From the sequence record OQ718158.1: a DNA stretch of 64,000 bases, one strand, 5' to 3'. Positions within the stretch are counted from its first letter, which is position 1; each line of letters opens with the position of its first letter. The position numbers and the translations under genes were made by a program. The notes under the pieces are model-generated. The model was not told the origin of the DNA. It saw nothing but the letters and a program-made list of their open reading frames with translations, and did no database searches. Of the stretch, positions 14,771-50,523 are shown one piece after another.

Positions 14771-14828
14771 TTGACAAACTCATTCAGTACTGTATAATGT
14801 TTATCAAGGGGATGAACTTCTCATCCCC
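14771..14828 (+). promoter_or_regulatory. promoter + 5' stem-loop cassette (same design as early region)
   Basis: TTGACA-16-TATAAT then GGGGATGA-ACTTC-TCATCCCC and GAGG. Confidence 0.75.
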
Positions 14829-45395: not shown

Positions 45396-45602
45396 ATGAA
45401 CGAACAGAAAGAATTTTACACCAAACACCTCAGTGCATCAGAACAAATGTTTCTAAGGAGTGTATCACCTTTAAGTTTAGATACACCACACGCCAGAGAT
45501 TGTTTTAATAATTGTATACGTATTACTCTAGAAGCTTTAGAAAATAATAACAAAAATATTCAGTACTCAGGCGTAATGGGACTAATATTCTTCTATGAAT
45601 AA
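45396..45602 (+). CDS. micro-ORF array member
   Basis: KHLSASEQMFLR; paralog of 45976. Confidence 0.7.
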   Translation: MNEQKEFYTKHLSASEQMFLRSVSPLSLDTPHARDCFNNCIRITLEALENNNKNIQYSGVMGLIFFYE

Positions 45603-45783
45603 CAAAGAATTCTACATAAACCATCTGGAACTAAACTCCCAAATGCTTATACCACTAAACCCAATAGATATCAAGGATAAGAAAAATACCCAACAATTCA
45701 TTTACCATACACAGTGTGCTATCACTCCAGATTATAATACATATAAACTGTACTACATTCTCGCCCTAATATACAGGTACTAA
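45595..45783 (+). CDS. micro-ORF array member
   Basis: MNNKEFYI...LIYRY. Confidence 0.7.
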   Translation: MNNKEFYINHLELNSQMLIPLNPIDIKDKKNTQQFIYHTQCAITPDYNTYKLYYILALIYRY

Positions 45784-45784
45784 T

Positions 45785-45970
45785 ATGCATAGAGAATACT
45801 ACACACAATTTGTTAAAGGGAACTACAAACACGCCGTCCCCGTAAACCCCTTAAATTCTAATGACCCAAGTACTATATTCTTGTTCCATGACGCAATACG
45901 TACAGTACTCAATACTAAAGATGAACAGGTGCAGTACGTATTCTTACTATTACTTATATACAGACACTAA
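45785..45970 (+). CDS. micro-ORF array member
   Basis: MHREYY...LIYRH. Confidence 0.7.
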   Translation: MHREYYTQFVKGNYKHAVPVNPLNSNDPSTIFLFHDAIRTVLNTKDEQVQYVFLLLLIYRH

Positions 45971-45975
45971 CTAAT

Positions 45976-46185
45976 ATGAATAAAGAACATAAAGAATACT
46001 ACTCCAAACACCTCAGCCCCTCAGAACAAATGTTTCTAAGGACTACAGCACCTTTAAGTACTGATACATATTTCGGCAGATTATGCTACAATAATTGTAT
46101 TCAAATGACTTTAAACGCAAACGACAATAATAACAGTACTAACCTGTACTCAGGCATCATAGGTATACTATTTCTATATGAATAA
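45976..46185 (+). CDS. micro-ORF array member
   Basis: KHLSPSEQMFLR. Confidence 0.7.
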   Translation: MNKEHKEYYSKHLSPSEQMFLRTTAPLSTDTYFGRLCYNNCIQMTLNANDNNNSTNLYSGIIGILFLYE

Positions 46186-46360
46186 AGAACATAAAGACTT
46201 CTATATAAGAAAACTAACATTCGTCCCCGTAAAAATATATAAAGAATGCGACCCAAGATTATACCTATGGCACTTCAATGAGTGCATAAAAGATTCTATA
46301 TACCCTAAGAACTACAAAGAACAATTGTGCTCAGTACTAACCCTAGTACTATCATATTAA
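46178..46360 (+). CDS. micro-ORF array member
   Basis: HKDFYI...FNEC. Confidence 0.7.
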   Translation: MNKEHKDFYIRKLTFVPVKIYKECDPRLYLWHFNECIKDSIYPKNYKEQLCSVLTLVLSY

Positions 46361-46373
46361 TAGAGATAATACT

Positions 46374-46556
46374 ATGCATAAAGACTTCTATATAAGTAAA
46401 CTCAAAGAGAATGAACAAGCATGGGTTAACAATTTAATCCCCCTGGCAATGACTCAATACGAATTTAATATGTGTACAAAGATTGTTTTAACTAGTAATG
46501 ATATCTCTAATACGTACTACTTCCTATTAAGAGTACTATATGGTACTTTGAAATAA
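46374..46556 (+). CDS. micro-ORF array member
   Basis: MHKDFYISKL...FNMC. Confidence 0.7.
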   Translation: MHKDFYISKLKENEQAWVNNLIPLAMTQYEFNMCTKIVLTSNDISNTYYFLLRVLYGTLK

Positions 46557-46567
46557 TAAGGTATACT

Positions 46568-46774
46568 ATGCAGAACATAAAAAACTATAAAGAGTACTAT
46601 ATAAGTAAACTACCACCGACTGACCAAGCATGGATTAGATCTATAATAGTACTGGCATTTAATAGATATGCATTTAACAGATGTACCGAGATTGCTATAG
46701 ACCCTTATAATATTAAAGAGAATGTACAGCATAATCAGTACTACTATATGTTAATGCTTATATATAGGAAGTAA
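46568..46774 (+). CDS. micro-ORF array member
   Basis: YKEYYISKLP...FNRC...LIYRK. Confidence 0.7.
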   Translation: MQNIKNYKEYYISKLPPTDQAWIRSIIVLAFNRYAFNRCTEIAIDPYNIKENVQHNQYYYMLMLIYRK

Positions 46775-46898
46775 TTCAACATATAGACAGGGGGAAGCTC
46801 CGCAGGGAAAGCATTGGACAGGCTTTAACATATGTTATATATGTTAAAATTCAGCCTGGACAAATGCGATCACTAGGATTCTCCCCAGGCTAAACCCC

Positions 46899-47146
46899 GT
46901 AATCATATGTAGTCATAAGTAATCATATATAAACATTTAAGTAATCATTTATAATCACTGTAGTGATCAGTAGTGAGTACTAGAGTGTAATAGAGTACAG
47001 GAATGTGCACGTTTAATCAAGAACGTAGCAGTACTGATATGTCACTAAAGTAGGCAGAGGAAGTCTGCCGTACTTTGTAGTTTCCAAGCTCCTTTTCCAT
47101 TTTGCAAATTACATCAAATGTAATCAAAAGTAATCAAAAGTAATCA
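46899..47146 (+). repeat. 10-bp phased GTAATCA repeats
   Basis: 46899, 46909 (GTAGTCA), 46919, 46941, 46951 (ATAATCA); 47120, 47130, 47140. Confidence 0.75.
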
Positions 47147-47423
47147 CGCAATGATTAGTACTGAATTATTACTTTCACCTTAATTTCAATTACCCCTTTA
47201 CCCTTCGGGGTAAAATTCCATTACCCCTTGAGGCTCCAGCAAAAAGTTGGTTAGTACTCCATCCTAAATCTCGATCCTAAAAATTTTGGAGTACCTATGA
47301 AATAAAAGTTGGATCTTCGAAATTTGAAATTTACGTTGGGACGTTTATGATTTGTGGGATATAATGATGTTTGTAGTCGGGTAGTTTTCAAGAATATCAG
47401 CACTGAATAATGAAAGAAAGCTA

Positions 47424-47451
47424 TTGACATTATGATTCAGTACTGTATAAT
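47424..47451 (+). promoter_or_regulatory. sigma70 promoter with no downstream ORF
   Basis: TTGACA-16-TATAAT. Confidence 0.75.
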
Positions 47452-47457
47452 GTTCTA

Positions 47458-47745
47458 CATAGGGTGATGAGTTGCTGCGAACAATTCATTTACTCTACCT
47501 CCTGTCGTGAGACAGTACAGAAAAGATAGTTCCTCCTGTGGTGGTACATCTTTTTGAACCTCATATGAAAATCGTAATAACAGTACTGATATTAACAGAA
47601 TGGTGTCAGTACTGATTTTAATCTAAAGCATTATGCCACCAGCACAAGCTGGTGGATTCCCTCTAACAGTATTCAGTACTACATGATGGTCTTCATCCTC
47701 CTAGGGTAACATAGTGAGGGCTATGATGGCAGTACTGAATACTCC
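47458..47745 (+). ncRNA. candidate ~290-nt structured RNA
   Basis: Run of at least six stems with G-U pairs, a GNRA loop and a multibranch 3' domain. Confidence 0.45.
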
Positions 47746-47840
47746 CTTTCAAAAGATAGATCTATGGTATAGTACTGACGGATTTTGGGCGTAGTTACCC
47801 TGGATGGATTTTGGACGTAGATATGTCTAGCCCTCCAGAA

Positions 47841-47968
47841 GTCTGGAAGTAAAGATGGCTATCCATCTAGACGGCTAAACGGCTAGATTTCTGGATGGCT
47901 AGATGGCTAGACGTTTGGACGGCTAAACGGCTAGATGGTTACACGTCTGGAAGTATAGACGGCTAAAT
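47841..47968 (+). repeat. 16 tandem degenerate octamers (consensus GGCTAGAY)
   Basis: GGCTA at 47857, 47873, 47881, 47897, 47905, 47921, 47929, 47961, all in one 8-bp phase. Confidence 0.85.
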
Positions 47969-48119
47969 CAAAATTTTATTTTGTTTTTCCAATAGTTCCC
48001 CTACCGCGTGGGGATAGTTTCCCCGCAGTATCTGGAGTTAGATTTTTCTGAATCTGGAATCATTATCTTATAAACTGGGGGCAATGTCAACGACCTGGAC
48101 GGATATTTTTAAAAATTTT

Positions 48120-48215
48120 TTCAGTACTGAATTTTGGGCGTAACTATGCACCCGGTGGGCTTGAGTCTTTCTCGACTTGATGGAACTATTATACAGTACT
48201 GAAAAAATAAAGCAA
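48120..48215 (-). ncRNA. promoter-driven GGGTGC cassette A
   Basis: TTGCTT-16-TATAAT then AAGCCCACCGGGTGCATAGTTACGCCC; no ORF. Confidence 0.5.
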
Positions 48216-48249
48216 TACCCTGGAAGCAAAAAAGTTTTAATTAATTTGC

Positions 48250-48338
48250 TTGCTATCCTGGGCCGGACTATGGTACTATATTTCAGTACTGAGAAAGTGC
48301 GTTTACCTGCTAGGGTGCGGGAGTGTATCCTTTTTTTA
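48250..48338 (+). ncRNA. promoter-driven GGGTGC cassette B
   Basis: TTGCTA-18-TGG-TACTAT then CCTGCTAGGGTGCGGGAGTGTATC. Confidence 0.45.
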
Positions 48339-48341
48339 TAT

Positions 48342-48431
48342 CTTGAATTTTGGGCGTAATTCCGCACCCTCTGGGGTTTCCGCTTTCTCGCGTCTATGTA
48401 GTAATTATACGCTTTTTCAGGATCAAGTCAA
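48342..48431 (-). ncRNA. promoter-driven GGGTGC cassette C
   Basis: TTGACT-16-TATAAT then AACCCCAGAGGGTGCGGAATTACGCCC. Confidence 0.45.
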
Positions 48432-48807
48432 TACCTAAAAACAAAATAATTGAAAATAATTTAACGCGTTTAAACGGCCCGTAAAGCCCTGGAATGATTG
48501 GAATGGTGCAAATGTATAGCTTAGGTGTATTAATGCGTTAGAATGCGTCTGAGGCCGTTTTACGGGGTATAGGGATGATTTGGTGGATTGATTCAGTACT
48601 GAATGATAGTACTACTATATAGAAAGATAGTTCCCCTGGATGGTTGCAGTACTGAATGATAGTACTGAATAATAGTTCCCCTATATAGAAAGAAAACTAT
48701 TTTAAAAGTATTTGTAGAAAGTACTTGCAAACTAAGTTTAACGGCGTATAATGTTTTACATCGAGAGCGGGAACACTTCCCGCTACATATTACGAGAGAT
48801 TAAAACG

Positions 48808-49170
48808 ATGGCGACTCAAATCACTAAAATTATTGCTAACCTGGTTAACTTTCGCGACGAGATGAAAGATCTTCCGGCAGAAACGGTAAAAATTCACATT
48901 TCAGCTTATCGGGAACTTATTGCAATGTTACCGCTTAAGCGTGAACAATACGCCGCGACCGTGATGCTTGATGCGATGATCCATAAGATGATCGCCAGTG
49001 ATTTAACGATGGTTTATCAGTATATGGGCGAAAATTTCGCGGTGTATAGTAAACCAGTACCAGGAATGGAAAGTACAGAAGTATTACACGGTTTAAATTT
49101 AAAACAAGATGCATGGGATAATATGCCTCGTTTCCTGGTATGGGCTGACAGTGGCAAGATTTACGAATAA
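48808..49170 (+). CDS. early hypothetical protein
   Basis: True start MATQITK after cassette. Confidence 0.75.
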   Translation: MATQITKIIANLVNFRDEMKDLPAETVKIHISAYRELIAMLPLKREQYAATVMLDAMIHKMIASDLTMVYQYMGENFAVYSKPVPGMESTEVLHGLNLKQDAWDNMPRFLVWADSGKIYE

Positions 49171-49264
49171 GTTTTAAAAAGTACTTGCAAACTAAGTTTA
49201 AAAGCGTATAATGTTTTACATCAGGTGGGGAATAGTTCCCCACTATAATTAAGAGATTAATTTC

Positions 49265-49498
49265 ATGAGTACTATTTTAACTGTTTCTCAATCCGTTGCA
49301 CTGACTGACCTATTAAACGCTTTAAGCCGTTGCACTGAGGTTGGCTTGTTTGATGTGGTAGACGTTGCACCGGACGTTATTAATCATTTTTGTGATGCGA
49401 TGGAAGAATGTAAGGAAGATGATAGCCGTATGATGGCGGTCGCCTTTGAGGAAGTACAACCAGGTGAGATCAAAGGTTTACCAGTACTGAAAAAATAG
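49265..49498 (+). CDS. early hypothetical protein
   Basis: Own cassette. Confidence 0.75.
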   Translation: MSTILTVSQSVALTDLLNALSRCTEVGLFDVVDVAPDVINHFCDAMEECKEDDSRMMAVAFEEVQPGEIKGLPVLKK

Positions 49499-49580
49499 TA
49501 CTTGCAAACTAAGTTTAAAAGCGTATAATACTTTCTATCAGGTGGGGAATAGTTCCCCACTATATAAGAGGATTTAAAAA

Positions 49581-49820
49581 ATGGCTAAATCAAAAATGTT
49601 CTTAGGTCACAAAAACAAAACTCATTGGAATGTAAGCCTTTGGATTAATAACGATGAGTCATTGTACCGGTTGGCCCAGGACTTTATTAACGATAGCACT
49701 AATCGCAATGATGCGGCCCGTCATATGATGTTATTTTTAGAACAGACTGGACAAGATAAAACACCGGACGGATTCAAATATAGCACTACTGCGATCCGTG
49801 CGGCGATGGTTGGAATGTAA
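49581..49820 (+). CDS. early protein, paralog of 51684
   Basis: GHKNKTHWNVSLWINN...TPDGFKYSTTAIRAAMVGM. Confidence 0.8.
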   Translation: MAKSKMFLGHKNKTHWNVSLWINNDESLYRLAQDFINDSTNRNDAARHMMLFLEQTGQDKTPDGFKYSTTAIRAAMVGM

Positions 49821-49908
49821 TAGAATAGAATTTATTTAAAGTACTATTGCACGGGGATAGTACTTTATAATAGTGTTTTATTCATACACCAACGATAAGG
49901 GCAACAGC

Positions 49909-50175
49909 ATGAATATTAAGTATTTTGCGACGCGTGAACAAGCTCGGATCGCCGCACGGCAGGACGGGGCAACGTTTAAAGATATGGGCGTACAATCGGA
50001 ACGTGGTAAACGTTGGGCCATTGTAAAGCGTAGTACCGCCAGATCATTACAGTACTGGTTAGCGGCCTTAAAAAGTCCCGATAGTGTATCGCGTCGAGTG
50101 GTAGAAATAAAGCTCGACCGAAAGGGCAACCGCGTGACTGTGTACCGTACTAAAAAGATTGCAGTACTTGAATAA
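49909..50175 (+). CDS. early protein, paralog of 62423
   Basis: (Y/F)ATRExAR...FKDMG...RWA...DRKGNRVTVY. Confidence 0.8.
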   Translation: MNIKYFATREQARIAARQDGATFKDMGVQSERGKRWAIVKRSTARSLQYWLAALKSPDSVSRRVVEIKLDRKGNRVTVYRTKKIAVLE

Positions 50176-50262
50176 AAAGTACTTGCAAACTATGTTTAAT
50201 GGCGTATAATGTTTTACATCGAGAGCGGGAACACTTCCCGCCTATAACCTGGAGTAATAAAA

Positions 50263-50493
50263 ATGACTAATATGTATATGACTGAAGTTAAAACCGTAAA
50301 AGATACTACCACGAATAAAACTACTTACTTACAGCGGATCTGCGGTGTATGGCAACGTATCAGCAAATCAAAGTACTTTAAATTAACATCATATGCAAAC
50401 CGTTCGGATTCATTCAGTACTGAAATAAAAGGTAATAAAGTACACCAATACGGCACTTATTATTATTATAGCCTGGACGCGATTGCAGTCTAA
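50263..50493 (+). CDS. early hypothetical protein
   Basis: Own cassette. Confidence 0.75.
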   Translation: MTNMYMTEVKTVKDTTTNKTTYLQRICGVWQRISKSKYFKLTSYANRSDSFSTEIKGNKVHQYGTYYYYSLDAIAV

Positions 50494-50523
50494 GCAGTTT
50501 ACAAATCTTTACAATTGCCGGTA

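Follow-up and report, generated by a model that had tools for sequence, protein, structure and literature searches.

Abundant noncoding RNAs encoded in the terminal repeat of a jumbo phage have been described in PA5oct, a distant Pseudomonas phage that makes two such transcripts of unknown function (PMC7318152). These RNAs, ncRNA001 and ncRNA002, are free of open reading frames (ORFs), measure 236 and 451 nt, and are abundant from early infection; PA5oct uses the host RNA polymerase, and no known promoter was reported for either transcript (PMC7318152). Here we describe a candidate noncoding RNA on the + strand at positions 47,458 to 47,743 of a 64,000-nt stretch of sequence record OQ718158.1 (the window), which comes from the 378,573-bp genome of the Asteriusvirus jumbo phage Escherichia phage vB_Ec-M-J. 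Like the PA5oct RNAs, the candidate is ORF-free and lies inside a long direct terminal repeat; the PA5oct RNAs differ in lying 8 and 22 kb into the repeat and not at its first promoter. The structured element at this locus exceeds what is expected by chance, and its sequence indicates that it is probably a new noncoding RNA made early in infection.

The candidate was located relative to the end of the chromosome; subtracting 310,000 from a record coordinate gives the window coordinate. Direct terminal repeats of 21,525 bp are annotated in the record at positions 1 to 21,525, and record base 1 corresponds to window position 47,049, with an exact match over the following 3,000 bases. The 401-base region that holds the candidate is present again at record positions 352 to 752, inside the annotated repeat, and the genomes of phages E9.1 and BF17 begin at the same base as the vB_Ec-M-J record. 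As the repeat begins at window position 47,049, the candidate lies 376 to 712 bp from the physical left end, or 0.1 to 0.2% of the chromosome from its tip; the copy in the window is the one that opens the right-hand terminal repeat. The terminus (47,049 to 47,069, + strand) starts with AGTAGGCAGAGGAAGTCTGCC and carries a small inverted repeat, GGCAGA/TCTGCC. The noncoding gap that encloses the candidate spans 1,976 bp and is 100% identical to OQ718158.1. Because the first annotated gene begins at 48,808, approximately 1.76 kb at the end of the chromosome is noncoding.

An earlier note on this DNA had reported a consensus promoter followed by no ORF, and both observations were reproduced. The sigma-70 promoter TTGACA-16-TATAAT is found exactly at 47,424 to 47,451 on the + strand, 376 to 403 bp from the left genome end, and matches the consensus at 12 of 12 positions. 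The palindrome CAGTACTG (47,438 to 47,445) lies in its spacer and adjoins the -10 element. From base composition, about 0.14 exact 12/12 matches would be expected in the window on both strands together. TTGAC and the entire stretch from TTCAGTACTG to TATAATG were invariant in 15 genomes, and transcription is predicted to start at approximately 47,458. AGTACTG adjoins TATAAT in at least 14 + strand promoters, this one included; the family, with AGTACTTGCAA at -35 and AGTACTG-TATAATGT at -10, precedes small genes within the terminal repeat. A separate family-type promoter at 48,725 to 48,752 belongs to the first gene (48,808), and the candidate promoter is therefore without an obvious coding target.

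No + strand ORF of at least 30 amino acids was found between 46,775 and 48,177, and no micro-ORF was conserved among relatives, since those of 12 to 33 amino acids shift frame or vanish in phages A4, Turkey5, JNE01 and EJP2. The + strand micro-ORF MSCCEQFIYSTSCRETVQKR was rejected as a coding explanation for lack of conservation. A 19-codon ORF on the - strand, with AGGAGG and an AUG, was also rejected: AGGAGG is lost in Turkey5 and JNE01, and insertions of 7 to 8 nt lie inside it in G17, WPEC3 and BF17.

Folding of the 303-nt + strand stretch as RNA gave a minimum free energy of -102.9 kcal/mol (z = -5.6), a value reached by 0 of 100 dinucleotide shuffles. The same stretch folded as RNA from the - strand reached -87.6 kcal/mol (z = -3.4). 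The energy was thus better than that of the shuffled controls by which the earlier note had asked for the fold to be judged, and the same was true of the relatives. All six stems that it had named were present in the minimum-free-energy fold. Its description of the last stem as enclosing two small hairpins had to be corrected: this stem encloses one extended inner helix, which is capped by a small hairpin.

The six stem-loops, S1 to S6, all lie on the + strand. In S1 (47,460 to 47,497), AGGGUGAUGAGUUG pairs with CAAUUCAU-UUACUCU around the loop CUGCGAA. It is followed by a single-stranded CCUCCU box (47,498 to 47,503; context ACCUCCU), identical to the core of the anti-Shine-Dalgarno sequence of 16S rRNA, and by S2 (47,502 to 47,515), a CUGUC-GUGA-GACAG hairpin with a GNRA tetraloop. 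S3 (47,520 to 47,555) is closed by AAAAGAU and AUCUUUU and carries a second CCUCCU (47,532 to 47,537) near its tip. S4 and its tail occupy 47,581 to 47,624, with a stem (47,581 to 47,614) in which CAGUACUGAUAUUA and UGGUGUCAGUACUG form 14 bp, including three G.U pairs, before AUUUUAAUCU. S4 folds at -17.8 kcal/mol (z = -5.2) on the + strand and at -10.3 kcal/mol on the - strand, its nonpalindromic extension included. S5 (47,636 to 47,655; CCACCAGC-ACAA-GCUGGUGG) is a perfect 8-bp palindrome. The long stem-loop S6 (47,668 to 47,743) consists of an outer helix, AGUAUUCAGUACU paired with AGUACUGAAUACU, an inner 11-bp helix with four G.U pairs, and an apical CCU-CCUA-GGG; it has approximately 27 stacked pairs overall and carries the third CCUCCU (47,697 to 47,702) in its apical part. 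The inner helix of S6 folds on the + strand only (-17.2 kcal/mol, versus -8.2 kcal/mol on the - strand).

The 401-nt region was found in 45 phage records, at identities down to 67%. The comparison set consisted of 14 of these 45 records and two metagenome contigs, and 16 genomes entered the covariance-model alignments. A pattern scan of IMG/VR for divergent homologues returned only phage 121Q and chance matches, and a metagenome scan returned two 93%-identical contigs and one chance match. As few divergent homologues were found, the comparison is limited to Asteriusvirus, down to 67% identity, and a weak model match in Alcyoneusvirus. When the divergent phages A4, Turkey5, JNE01 and EJP2 were folded independently, the same six-hairpin layout was obtained. 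The + strand was more stable than the - strand by 11 to 17 kcal/mol in 15 of 15 phages, including EJP2, JNE01, Turkey5 and A4, which are 67 to 85% identical. Among the 11 phages for which shuffles were run, z ranged from -4.5 to -8.1 on the + strand and from -2.2 to -4.7 on the - strand.

Covariation was observed both in a sequence-only alignment and in structure-aware ones. RNAalifold applied to a sequence-only MAFFT alignment detected 8 compensated pairs. Structure-aware alignments were made with two covariance models, R1 and R2, with part 1 covering S1 to S4 and part 2 covering S5 and S6; the models detected one copy in the window and one in each of 15 relatives, with E values from 1e-10 to 1e-55. 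In part 1, 95.4% of the cells were paired and 13 pairs were doubly changed, compared with a mean of 5.8 after column shuffling (0 of 500 shuffles reached the observed count) and with 1 to 5 when the 3' partner was slid by 1 to 3 columns. In part 2, 98.6% of the cells were paired and 10 pairs were doubly changed, compared with a column-shuffle mean of 1.3 (again 0 of 500) and with 1 to 4 in the slid controls. Covariation in relatives, the absence of which the earlier note had said would count against an RNA, was therefore present, with 23 doubly compensated pairs overall versus 1 to 5 in slid controls and 95 to 99% of the cells paired across the 16 genomes.

These changes were distributed over the stems. 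In the model alignment, five pairs of S1 have changes on both sides. The sequence of S2 is nearly invariant, with its outer pair changed from C-G to A-U in Turkey5 and JNE01. Three pairs of S3 are doubly changed and 96% of its cells are paired. The extension of S4 beyond the palindrome is maintained by changes from A-U to U-A or U-G and from U-G to U-A or C-G. All eight pairs of S5 are doubly changed in at least one genome, 100% of its cells are paired, and A4 and EJP2 retain a hairpin there with different sequences. In S6, 99% of the cells are paired, nine pairs vary through wobble intermediates, and two vary through double changes. Insertions and deletions fall mostly in loops and linkers. 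G17, WPEC3 and BF17 have a 7- to 8-nt insertion in the 5' tail; Turkey5, JNE01 and EJP2 have 8-nt insertions in the loops of S3 and S4, that of S3 in Turkey5 and JNE01 lying in the apical loop; and deletions in CMSTMSU shorten the S1 loop, S2 and S5, with the hairpins remaining.

Part of the element was also recognized beyond Asteriusvirus. Klebsiella phage Muenster (Alcyoneusvirus) has a 12/12 promoter 271 to 299 bp from its own PhageTerm-defined terminus, followed by approximately 350 nt without an ORF. This stretch contains a hairpin of two AGTACT-containing arms (CAGTACTACTG / GGTAGTACTG) and then CUUUUAAUUUAAAG, the equivalent of S4 with a UUUUAAU tail. Model R1 aligned the 3' 100 nt of the Muenster stretch to S1, S2, and S4 with its tail (E = 1.7e-5); the alignment includes a hairpin with the same S1 loop, CUGCGAA, and a GUGA hairpin comparable to S2 was read by eye. 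In phages fENko-Kae01 and CBB, promoters lie 331 to 359 bp and 294 to 322 bp from the termini and are followed by ORF-free sequence rich in inverted repeats; fENko-Kae01 retains the S5 sequence CCCACCAGC-TTAA-GCTGGTGG. A first promoter with a hairpin-rich noncoding stretch is thus a positional constant of the RaK2-like group, and recognizable sequence homology is limited to Asteriusvirus and, in part, Alcyoneusvirus.

The palindrome CAGTACTG is a confounding factor in this analysis. It occurs 59 times in the window, coding regions included, where 1 copy is expected, and its AGTACT core occurs 274 times versus 22 expected (~12-fold), also inside genes. Two of the six stems, S4 and S6, are built around it. 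Any two copies of a palindrome will pair with each other, and the pairing in S4 and in the S6 outer helix is therefore partly "free." However, the palindrome-free segment S1 to S3 (47,458 to 47,560) gave z = -2.65 on the + strand and -0.44 on the - strand; as these parts are strand biased, the structure exceeds the palindrome and is strand specific. The explanation that the fold is a palindrome artefact only was rejected, since the stems without CAGTACTG are + strand specific and covary.

The motif is also part of the promoters. AGTAC is fused to the -35 element (AGTACTTGCAA) in approximately 17 promoters, and the order of elements in the family is AGTACTTGCAA at -35, AGTACTG-TATAATGT at -10, then TTTACAT..AAGGGGAG. 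Examples of the AGTACT motif in the window are found at 14,771, 47,424, 57,965, 60,078 and 61,651, and the density of CAGTACTG doubles from approximately 42 kb on, in the early region. By BLAST, the promoter module was also present in Serratia, Erwinia and Klebsiella jumbo phages; a literature search on the CAGTACTG motif returned nothing relevant.

The earlier note had proposed an RNA of approximately 290 nt. A structured stretch of this extent was confirmed, and the terminator-like S4 leaves the ~290-nt form as perhaps only a read-through product. S4 with AUUUUAAUCU passes a scan for terminator-like hairpins and recurs in Muenster; its stem is rich in G.U pairs, its U-tract is short, and S5 and S6 follow it. 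Because of this terminator-like hairpin, the main product may be approximately 165 nt long. The predicted products are therefore a main RNA of ~165 nt (47,458 to ~47,622) and a read-through RNA of ~290 nt extending to between ~47,745 and 47,760. No paper describing the element or any Asteriusvirus transcriptome was found in a literature search.

The CCUCCU boxes provide a possible indication of function. The candidate contains three, and no other 303-nt stretch of the window has three CCTCC on its + strand; the candidate has five CCTC where 0.7 would be expected, and CCTC is enriched in EJP2 and Muenster as well. The first box (47,498 to 47,503) has an unpaired probability of 0.94 and is conserved in most relatives, with the exception of Turkey5 and JNE01. 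The small early genes between 41,000 and 64,000 use the short ribosome-binding sites GAGG, AAGG and AGAG, and GGAGG occurs 7 times on the + (coding) strand of the window versus ~23 expected from base composition.

On balance, we favor the interpretation that the element is a new lineage-restricted noncoding RNA, the first transcription unit of the chromosome, which acts as an early riboregulator or decoy. As the terminal repeat enters the cell, host sigma-70 RNA polymerase would start at the consensus promoter, and the rightward transcript would fold cotranscriptionally into S1, S2 with its GNRA loop, and S3. Most transcripts would stop at S4 and its U-tract (~165 nt), and read-through would add S5 and the long S6 (~290 nt). 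The RNA would act in trans, its exposed boxes ACCUCCU, AACCUC, CCCUCU and CCUCCU pairing with purine-rich ribosome-binding sites on host or early phage mRNAs, a mechanism that we put forward tentatively and regard as unlikely in this specific form. CAGTACTG in the promoter spacer could allow later shut-off by a factor that reads the phage-wide motif. A bolder version, to which we attach little credence, is that the first transcript of Asteriusvirus and Alcyoneusvirus is an anti-Shine-Dalgarno mimic that displays several copies of the core of the 16S rRNA 3' end (CCUCCU). Such an abundant, stable RNA would mask AGGAGG-type sites on host mRNAs, or later on phage early mRNAs, and phage genes would escape through their short GAGG/AAGG sites and avoidance of GGAGG. 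If true, this would be an RNA-based reprogramming of translation initiation by a virulent phage.

Several observations weigh against a regulatory RNA of this kind. Of the three CCUCCU boxes, two are partially base paired (unpaired probability 0.27 to 0.37), and fENko-Kae01 and CBB lack pyrimidine boxes in the corresponding regions. BLAST against E. coli genomes revealed no long complementary stretch, even at E = 10, and mimicry of E. coli sequences or long antisense pairing to them was rejected on this ground. S4 is rich in A/U and G.U pairs and only four U residues follow it directly, so that termination may be weak. The candidate lies inside a 1.7-kb noncoding block that is rich in DNA repeats and uniformly conserved: the whole of 47,050 to 48,550 is ~90 to 97% identical among relatives, and the candidate is no better conserved than its surroundings. 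CAGTACTG, a DNA-level motif found also in coding regions, supplies much of the single-sequence z score. The pair counts were taken from model-fitted alignments, which are biased toward the modeled fold, and only about four divergent lineages contributed the double changes. Under DNA energy parameters, the + and - strands differ little (-45.4 versus -42.0 kcal/mol), and the repeated inversion of the S5 loop is the behavior of a DNA palindrome. Finally, the only read data that bear the candidate are unstranded contigs of mixed wastewater phages: four sequencing runs over 45,500 to 50,500 yielded directionless contigs from mixtures of related phages, and depth differences in these runs track sequence divergence left of the repeat boundary, not expression.

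Some of these observations fit a region that works without any RNA function, through DNA-level signals such as a cluster of CAGTACTG sites bound by a factor, hairpins or cruciforms for repeat cutting, packaging or ejection, or single-stranded DNA structures like those of T5. There are six CAGTACTG sites within 350 bp, the site lies 0.4 to 0.7 kb from the physical terminus, the 12-fold genome-wide excess of AGTACT is accompanied by enrichment in this region, the entire 1.7-kb block is conserved, and folds with DNA parameters are significant on both strands. The S5 loop (47,644 to 47,647) flips between ACAA and TTGT in vB_Ec-M-J versus phAPEC6, UB versus 121Q, and Turkey5 versus JNE01; both forms occur in one wastewater sample, and the flip also breaks assembler contigs at 47,643. 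From these flips, the S5 palindrome also acts as a DNA hairpin, and its loop sequence is unconstrained. However, the palindrome-free stems (S1 to S3 and the inner helix of S6) fold on the + strand only, and G.U occurs in 39 pair-columns (174 cells) compared with 6 (7 cells) for A.C, a wobble asymmetry that upholds the argument of the earlier note that repeated G-U pairs favor selection on RNA. Helices that need three or four G.U pairs are conserved, yet the fold with DNA parameters pairs the S4 extension and the inner helix of S6 differently, although both are conserved and covarying. Resection from the left end would leave the - strand exposed rather than the + strand. The T5-like injection-stop region that the note had offered as its alternative is contradicted by position, since in T5 the stop signal is found where the first-step-transfer DNA ends and not at the tip, and the candidate lies 376 to 712 bp from the terminus of a 21,525-bp repeat; strand-specific wobble pairing is also unlike a duplex DNA signal. 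We consider an explanation by DNA signals without RNA function rather improbable. Because of the 39:6 ratio of G.U to A.C and the 11- to 17-kcal/mol advantage of the + strand, the evidence favors selection on a + sense RNA over double-stranded DNA signals, with DNA-level roles of the AGTACT sites superimposed. From these sequence comparisons, a transcribed RNA whose fold is under selection is likely.

Such an RNA could also act in cis or at an origin of replication. As a structured leader, it would serve antitermination of the HK022 put or lambda nut type, attenuation, or RNase III processing or stabilization of transcripts of the early region. Consistent with a leader, the structure starts 2 to 3 nt after the predicted start site, the invariant GNRA hairpin S2 resembles a boxB-type protein-binding hairpin, and several terminator-like hairpins are present further downstream. 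The absence of a U-tract after S5 and S6 would fit a continuing transcript, the ~27 stacked pairs of S6 would suit an RNase III site, and the T7 left end has a comparable layout of promoter, leader and RNase III site. The first gene lies 1.35 kb downstream, however, with its own promoter, as is the case for most early genes, and the conservation of S4 and its U-tract between genera would fit an RNA that ends there; we consider a leader function possible but unlikely. A transcript that primes or activates a terminal replication origin, by entering or opening an adjacent iteron and A/T-rich region in the manner of ColE1 RNA II, the R-loops of T4 oriF/oriG, or the T7 primary origin, would be consistent with the repeat array GGCTAGAT/GGCTAAAC (47,837 to 47,964), which lies ~100 bp downstream and precedes an A/T-rich stretch. 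This array is kept in CBB, and the Klebsiella phages have a different family of repeats in its place, as would be expected of initiator-specific iterons; converging leftward promoters at 48,090 and 48,431, with leftward sites also in Muenster and fENko-Kae01, could supply an antisense regulator. Against priming, no initiator gene was recognized nearby, the flanking proteins being of unknown function, and the terminator-like S4 would end most transcripts before they reached the repeats. We judge an origin transcript to be very unlikely.

If the early noncoding RNA that we favor is real, it would represent a new family of phage RNA without an Rfam counterpart. As the very first product of the incoming chromosome, it would be a natural candidate for a role in host take-over, defense evasion or control of early expression. 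It would also offer a compact handle, of one promoter and 165 to 290 nt, on the start of infection in 350-kb phages. Asteriusvirus and RaK2-like jumbo phages are collected as candidates for therapy, and more than 40 genomes carry the element.

The 1.7-kb gap as a whole is a conserved left-end control region that comprises the terminus, the AGTACT-based early promoter family, an array of putative iterons and two or more conserved hairpin domains. The array downstream of the candidate has a period of 8 nt (GGCTAGAT/GGCTAAAC/GACGGCTA), is followed by an A/T-rich run, and is conserved in Pectobacterium phage CBB; Muenster and fENko-Kae01 have several Fur-box-like repeats (GATAATGATTCTCATT) at the same position. 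In the sequences of these three relatives, the arrays lie at 690 to 800, 780 to 900 and 690 to 800. The repeats may function as iterons of an origin or may act as a decoy that binds a host regulator. A second conserved long hairpin (48,284 to 48,400; GAGAAAGUGCG..AGGGUGCGGGA / UUCCGCACCCU..CCGCUUUCUC) lies downstream of a promoter-like site and contains an inner terminator-like hairpin with a run of seven T (48,312 to 48,338). The AGGGTGCGG/CCGCACCCT arms of this hairpin are conserved in two other phages, fENko-Kae01 and CBB, and more weakly in Muenster. In contrast to the candidate, the hairpin has nearly the same folding score on either strand (z = -4.3 and -4.0).

Strong leftward sigma-70-like promoters with 11 of 12 matches were also observed on the - strand, at 48,431 to 48,404, 48,090 to 48,062, and 48,215. 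They face the candidate and the chromosome end and have no conserved ORF downstream, and leftward 11/12 promoter-like sites occur in the same part of the left ends of Muenster and fENko-Kae01. These promoters may give rise to antisense or convergent transcription.

The repeat boundary has features of its own. Genes immediately to its left (46,400 to 46,650) are nearly unalignable among Asteriusvirus (identity 0.07 to 0.4), and the noncoding start of the repeat has an identity of at least 0.9, marking a hot spot of variation or recombination beside the terminus. GTAATCA-type repeats spaced by 10 nt lie on both sides of the 47,049 boundary, at 46,892 to 46,957 and 47,113 to 47,156. CAGTACTGATATGTCACTAAAG (47,029 to 47,050) runs across the boundary at its end and resembles the 3' arm and tail of S4 (CAGTACTGATTTTAATCTAAAG). 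The boundary repeats and CAGTACTGATATGTCACTAAAG may be recognition or cutting signals for terminase. At 47,254 to 47,294, within the most conserved 100 bp of the region (0.94 to 0.98 identity), there is an inverted repeat, GTACTCCA...TGGAGTAC, whose arms enclose CCATCCTAAATC / CGATCCTAAA. Phages fENko-Kae01 and CBB have near-identical motifs ~100 to 200 bp from their termini, and the inverted repeat probably serves as an end signal at the DNA level. The neighboring proteins were examined for a clue to function, and all belong to families of unknown function.

The candidate was compared with known RNA families and phage elements. Rfam gave 0 matches to the whole window at gathering thresholds, and only microRNA and snoRNA hairpin noise of 17 to 21 bits to the candidate at E values up to 5. 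Homology to the PA5oct RNAs was rejected, since R1, run with filters off, and R2 gave no match. We observed that ncRNA001 (264 to 499 of the PA5oct stretch compared) carries ACCUCCU approximately 10 to 15 nt from its annotated 5' end and has a promoter-like site, TTTACA-17-TATACT, upstream.

The left end of T7 carries promoters A1 to A3, a leftward minor promoter and the RNase III site R0.3. It shares with the candidate region a noncoding entering end of several hundred base pairs on a terminally repetitive genome, strong rightward host promoters and a leftward promoter, and it also has a structured RNA processing site. The T7 leader differs in running directly into gene 0.3, and the phages are unrelated; we know of no discrete terminated RNA or covarying multihairpin domain described there. 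The pRNA of phi29 is, like the candidate, a structured RNA (~170 nt) made from an early promoter within a few hundred base pairs of the left end. The candidate has no sign of the paired intermolecular loops that define pRNA and no Rfam match. pRNA belongs to protein-primed podoviruses; for the present phage, the phAPEC6 paper indicates a large terminase of the T4-like type.

Like HK022 put and lambda nut, the candidate places hairpins directly downstream of a first early promoter. The put and nut sites span ~70 nt and consist of two hairpins or of boxA and boxB, with a GNRA-like boxB loop; the candidate has six hairpins, and no boxA match was seen in Muenster. The T5 injection-stop signal lies ~8% into the T5 genome, at the distal end of the first-step-transfer DNA. 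Its region resembles that of the candidate in being noncoding, rich in repeats and palindromes, and placed in a long terminal repeat with early genes. The candidate differs in lying 0.1 to 0.2% into the genome and in its strand-specific wobble pairing, which a duplex DNA signal does not need.

In Firmicutes, C-rich small RNAs such as RsaE/RoxS and the loops of RNAIII mask ribosome-binding sites. Like them, the candidate displays on its hairpins several exposed C/U-rich boxes that are complementary to Shine-Dalgarno sequences, and a terminator-like hairpin may form its 3' end; it is unlike them in that there is no homology, the host belongs to a different phylum, and two of its three CCUCCU boxes are partly paired. 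Among the phage and plasmid elements, phi29 pRNA, HK022 put, lambda nut, the T7 leader and ColE1 RNA II are functional analogies only.

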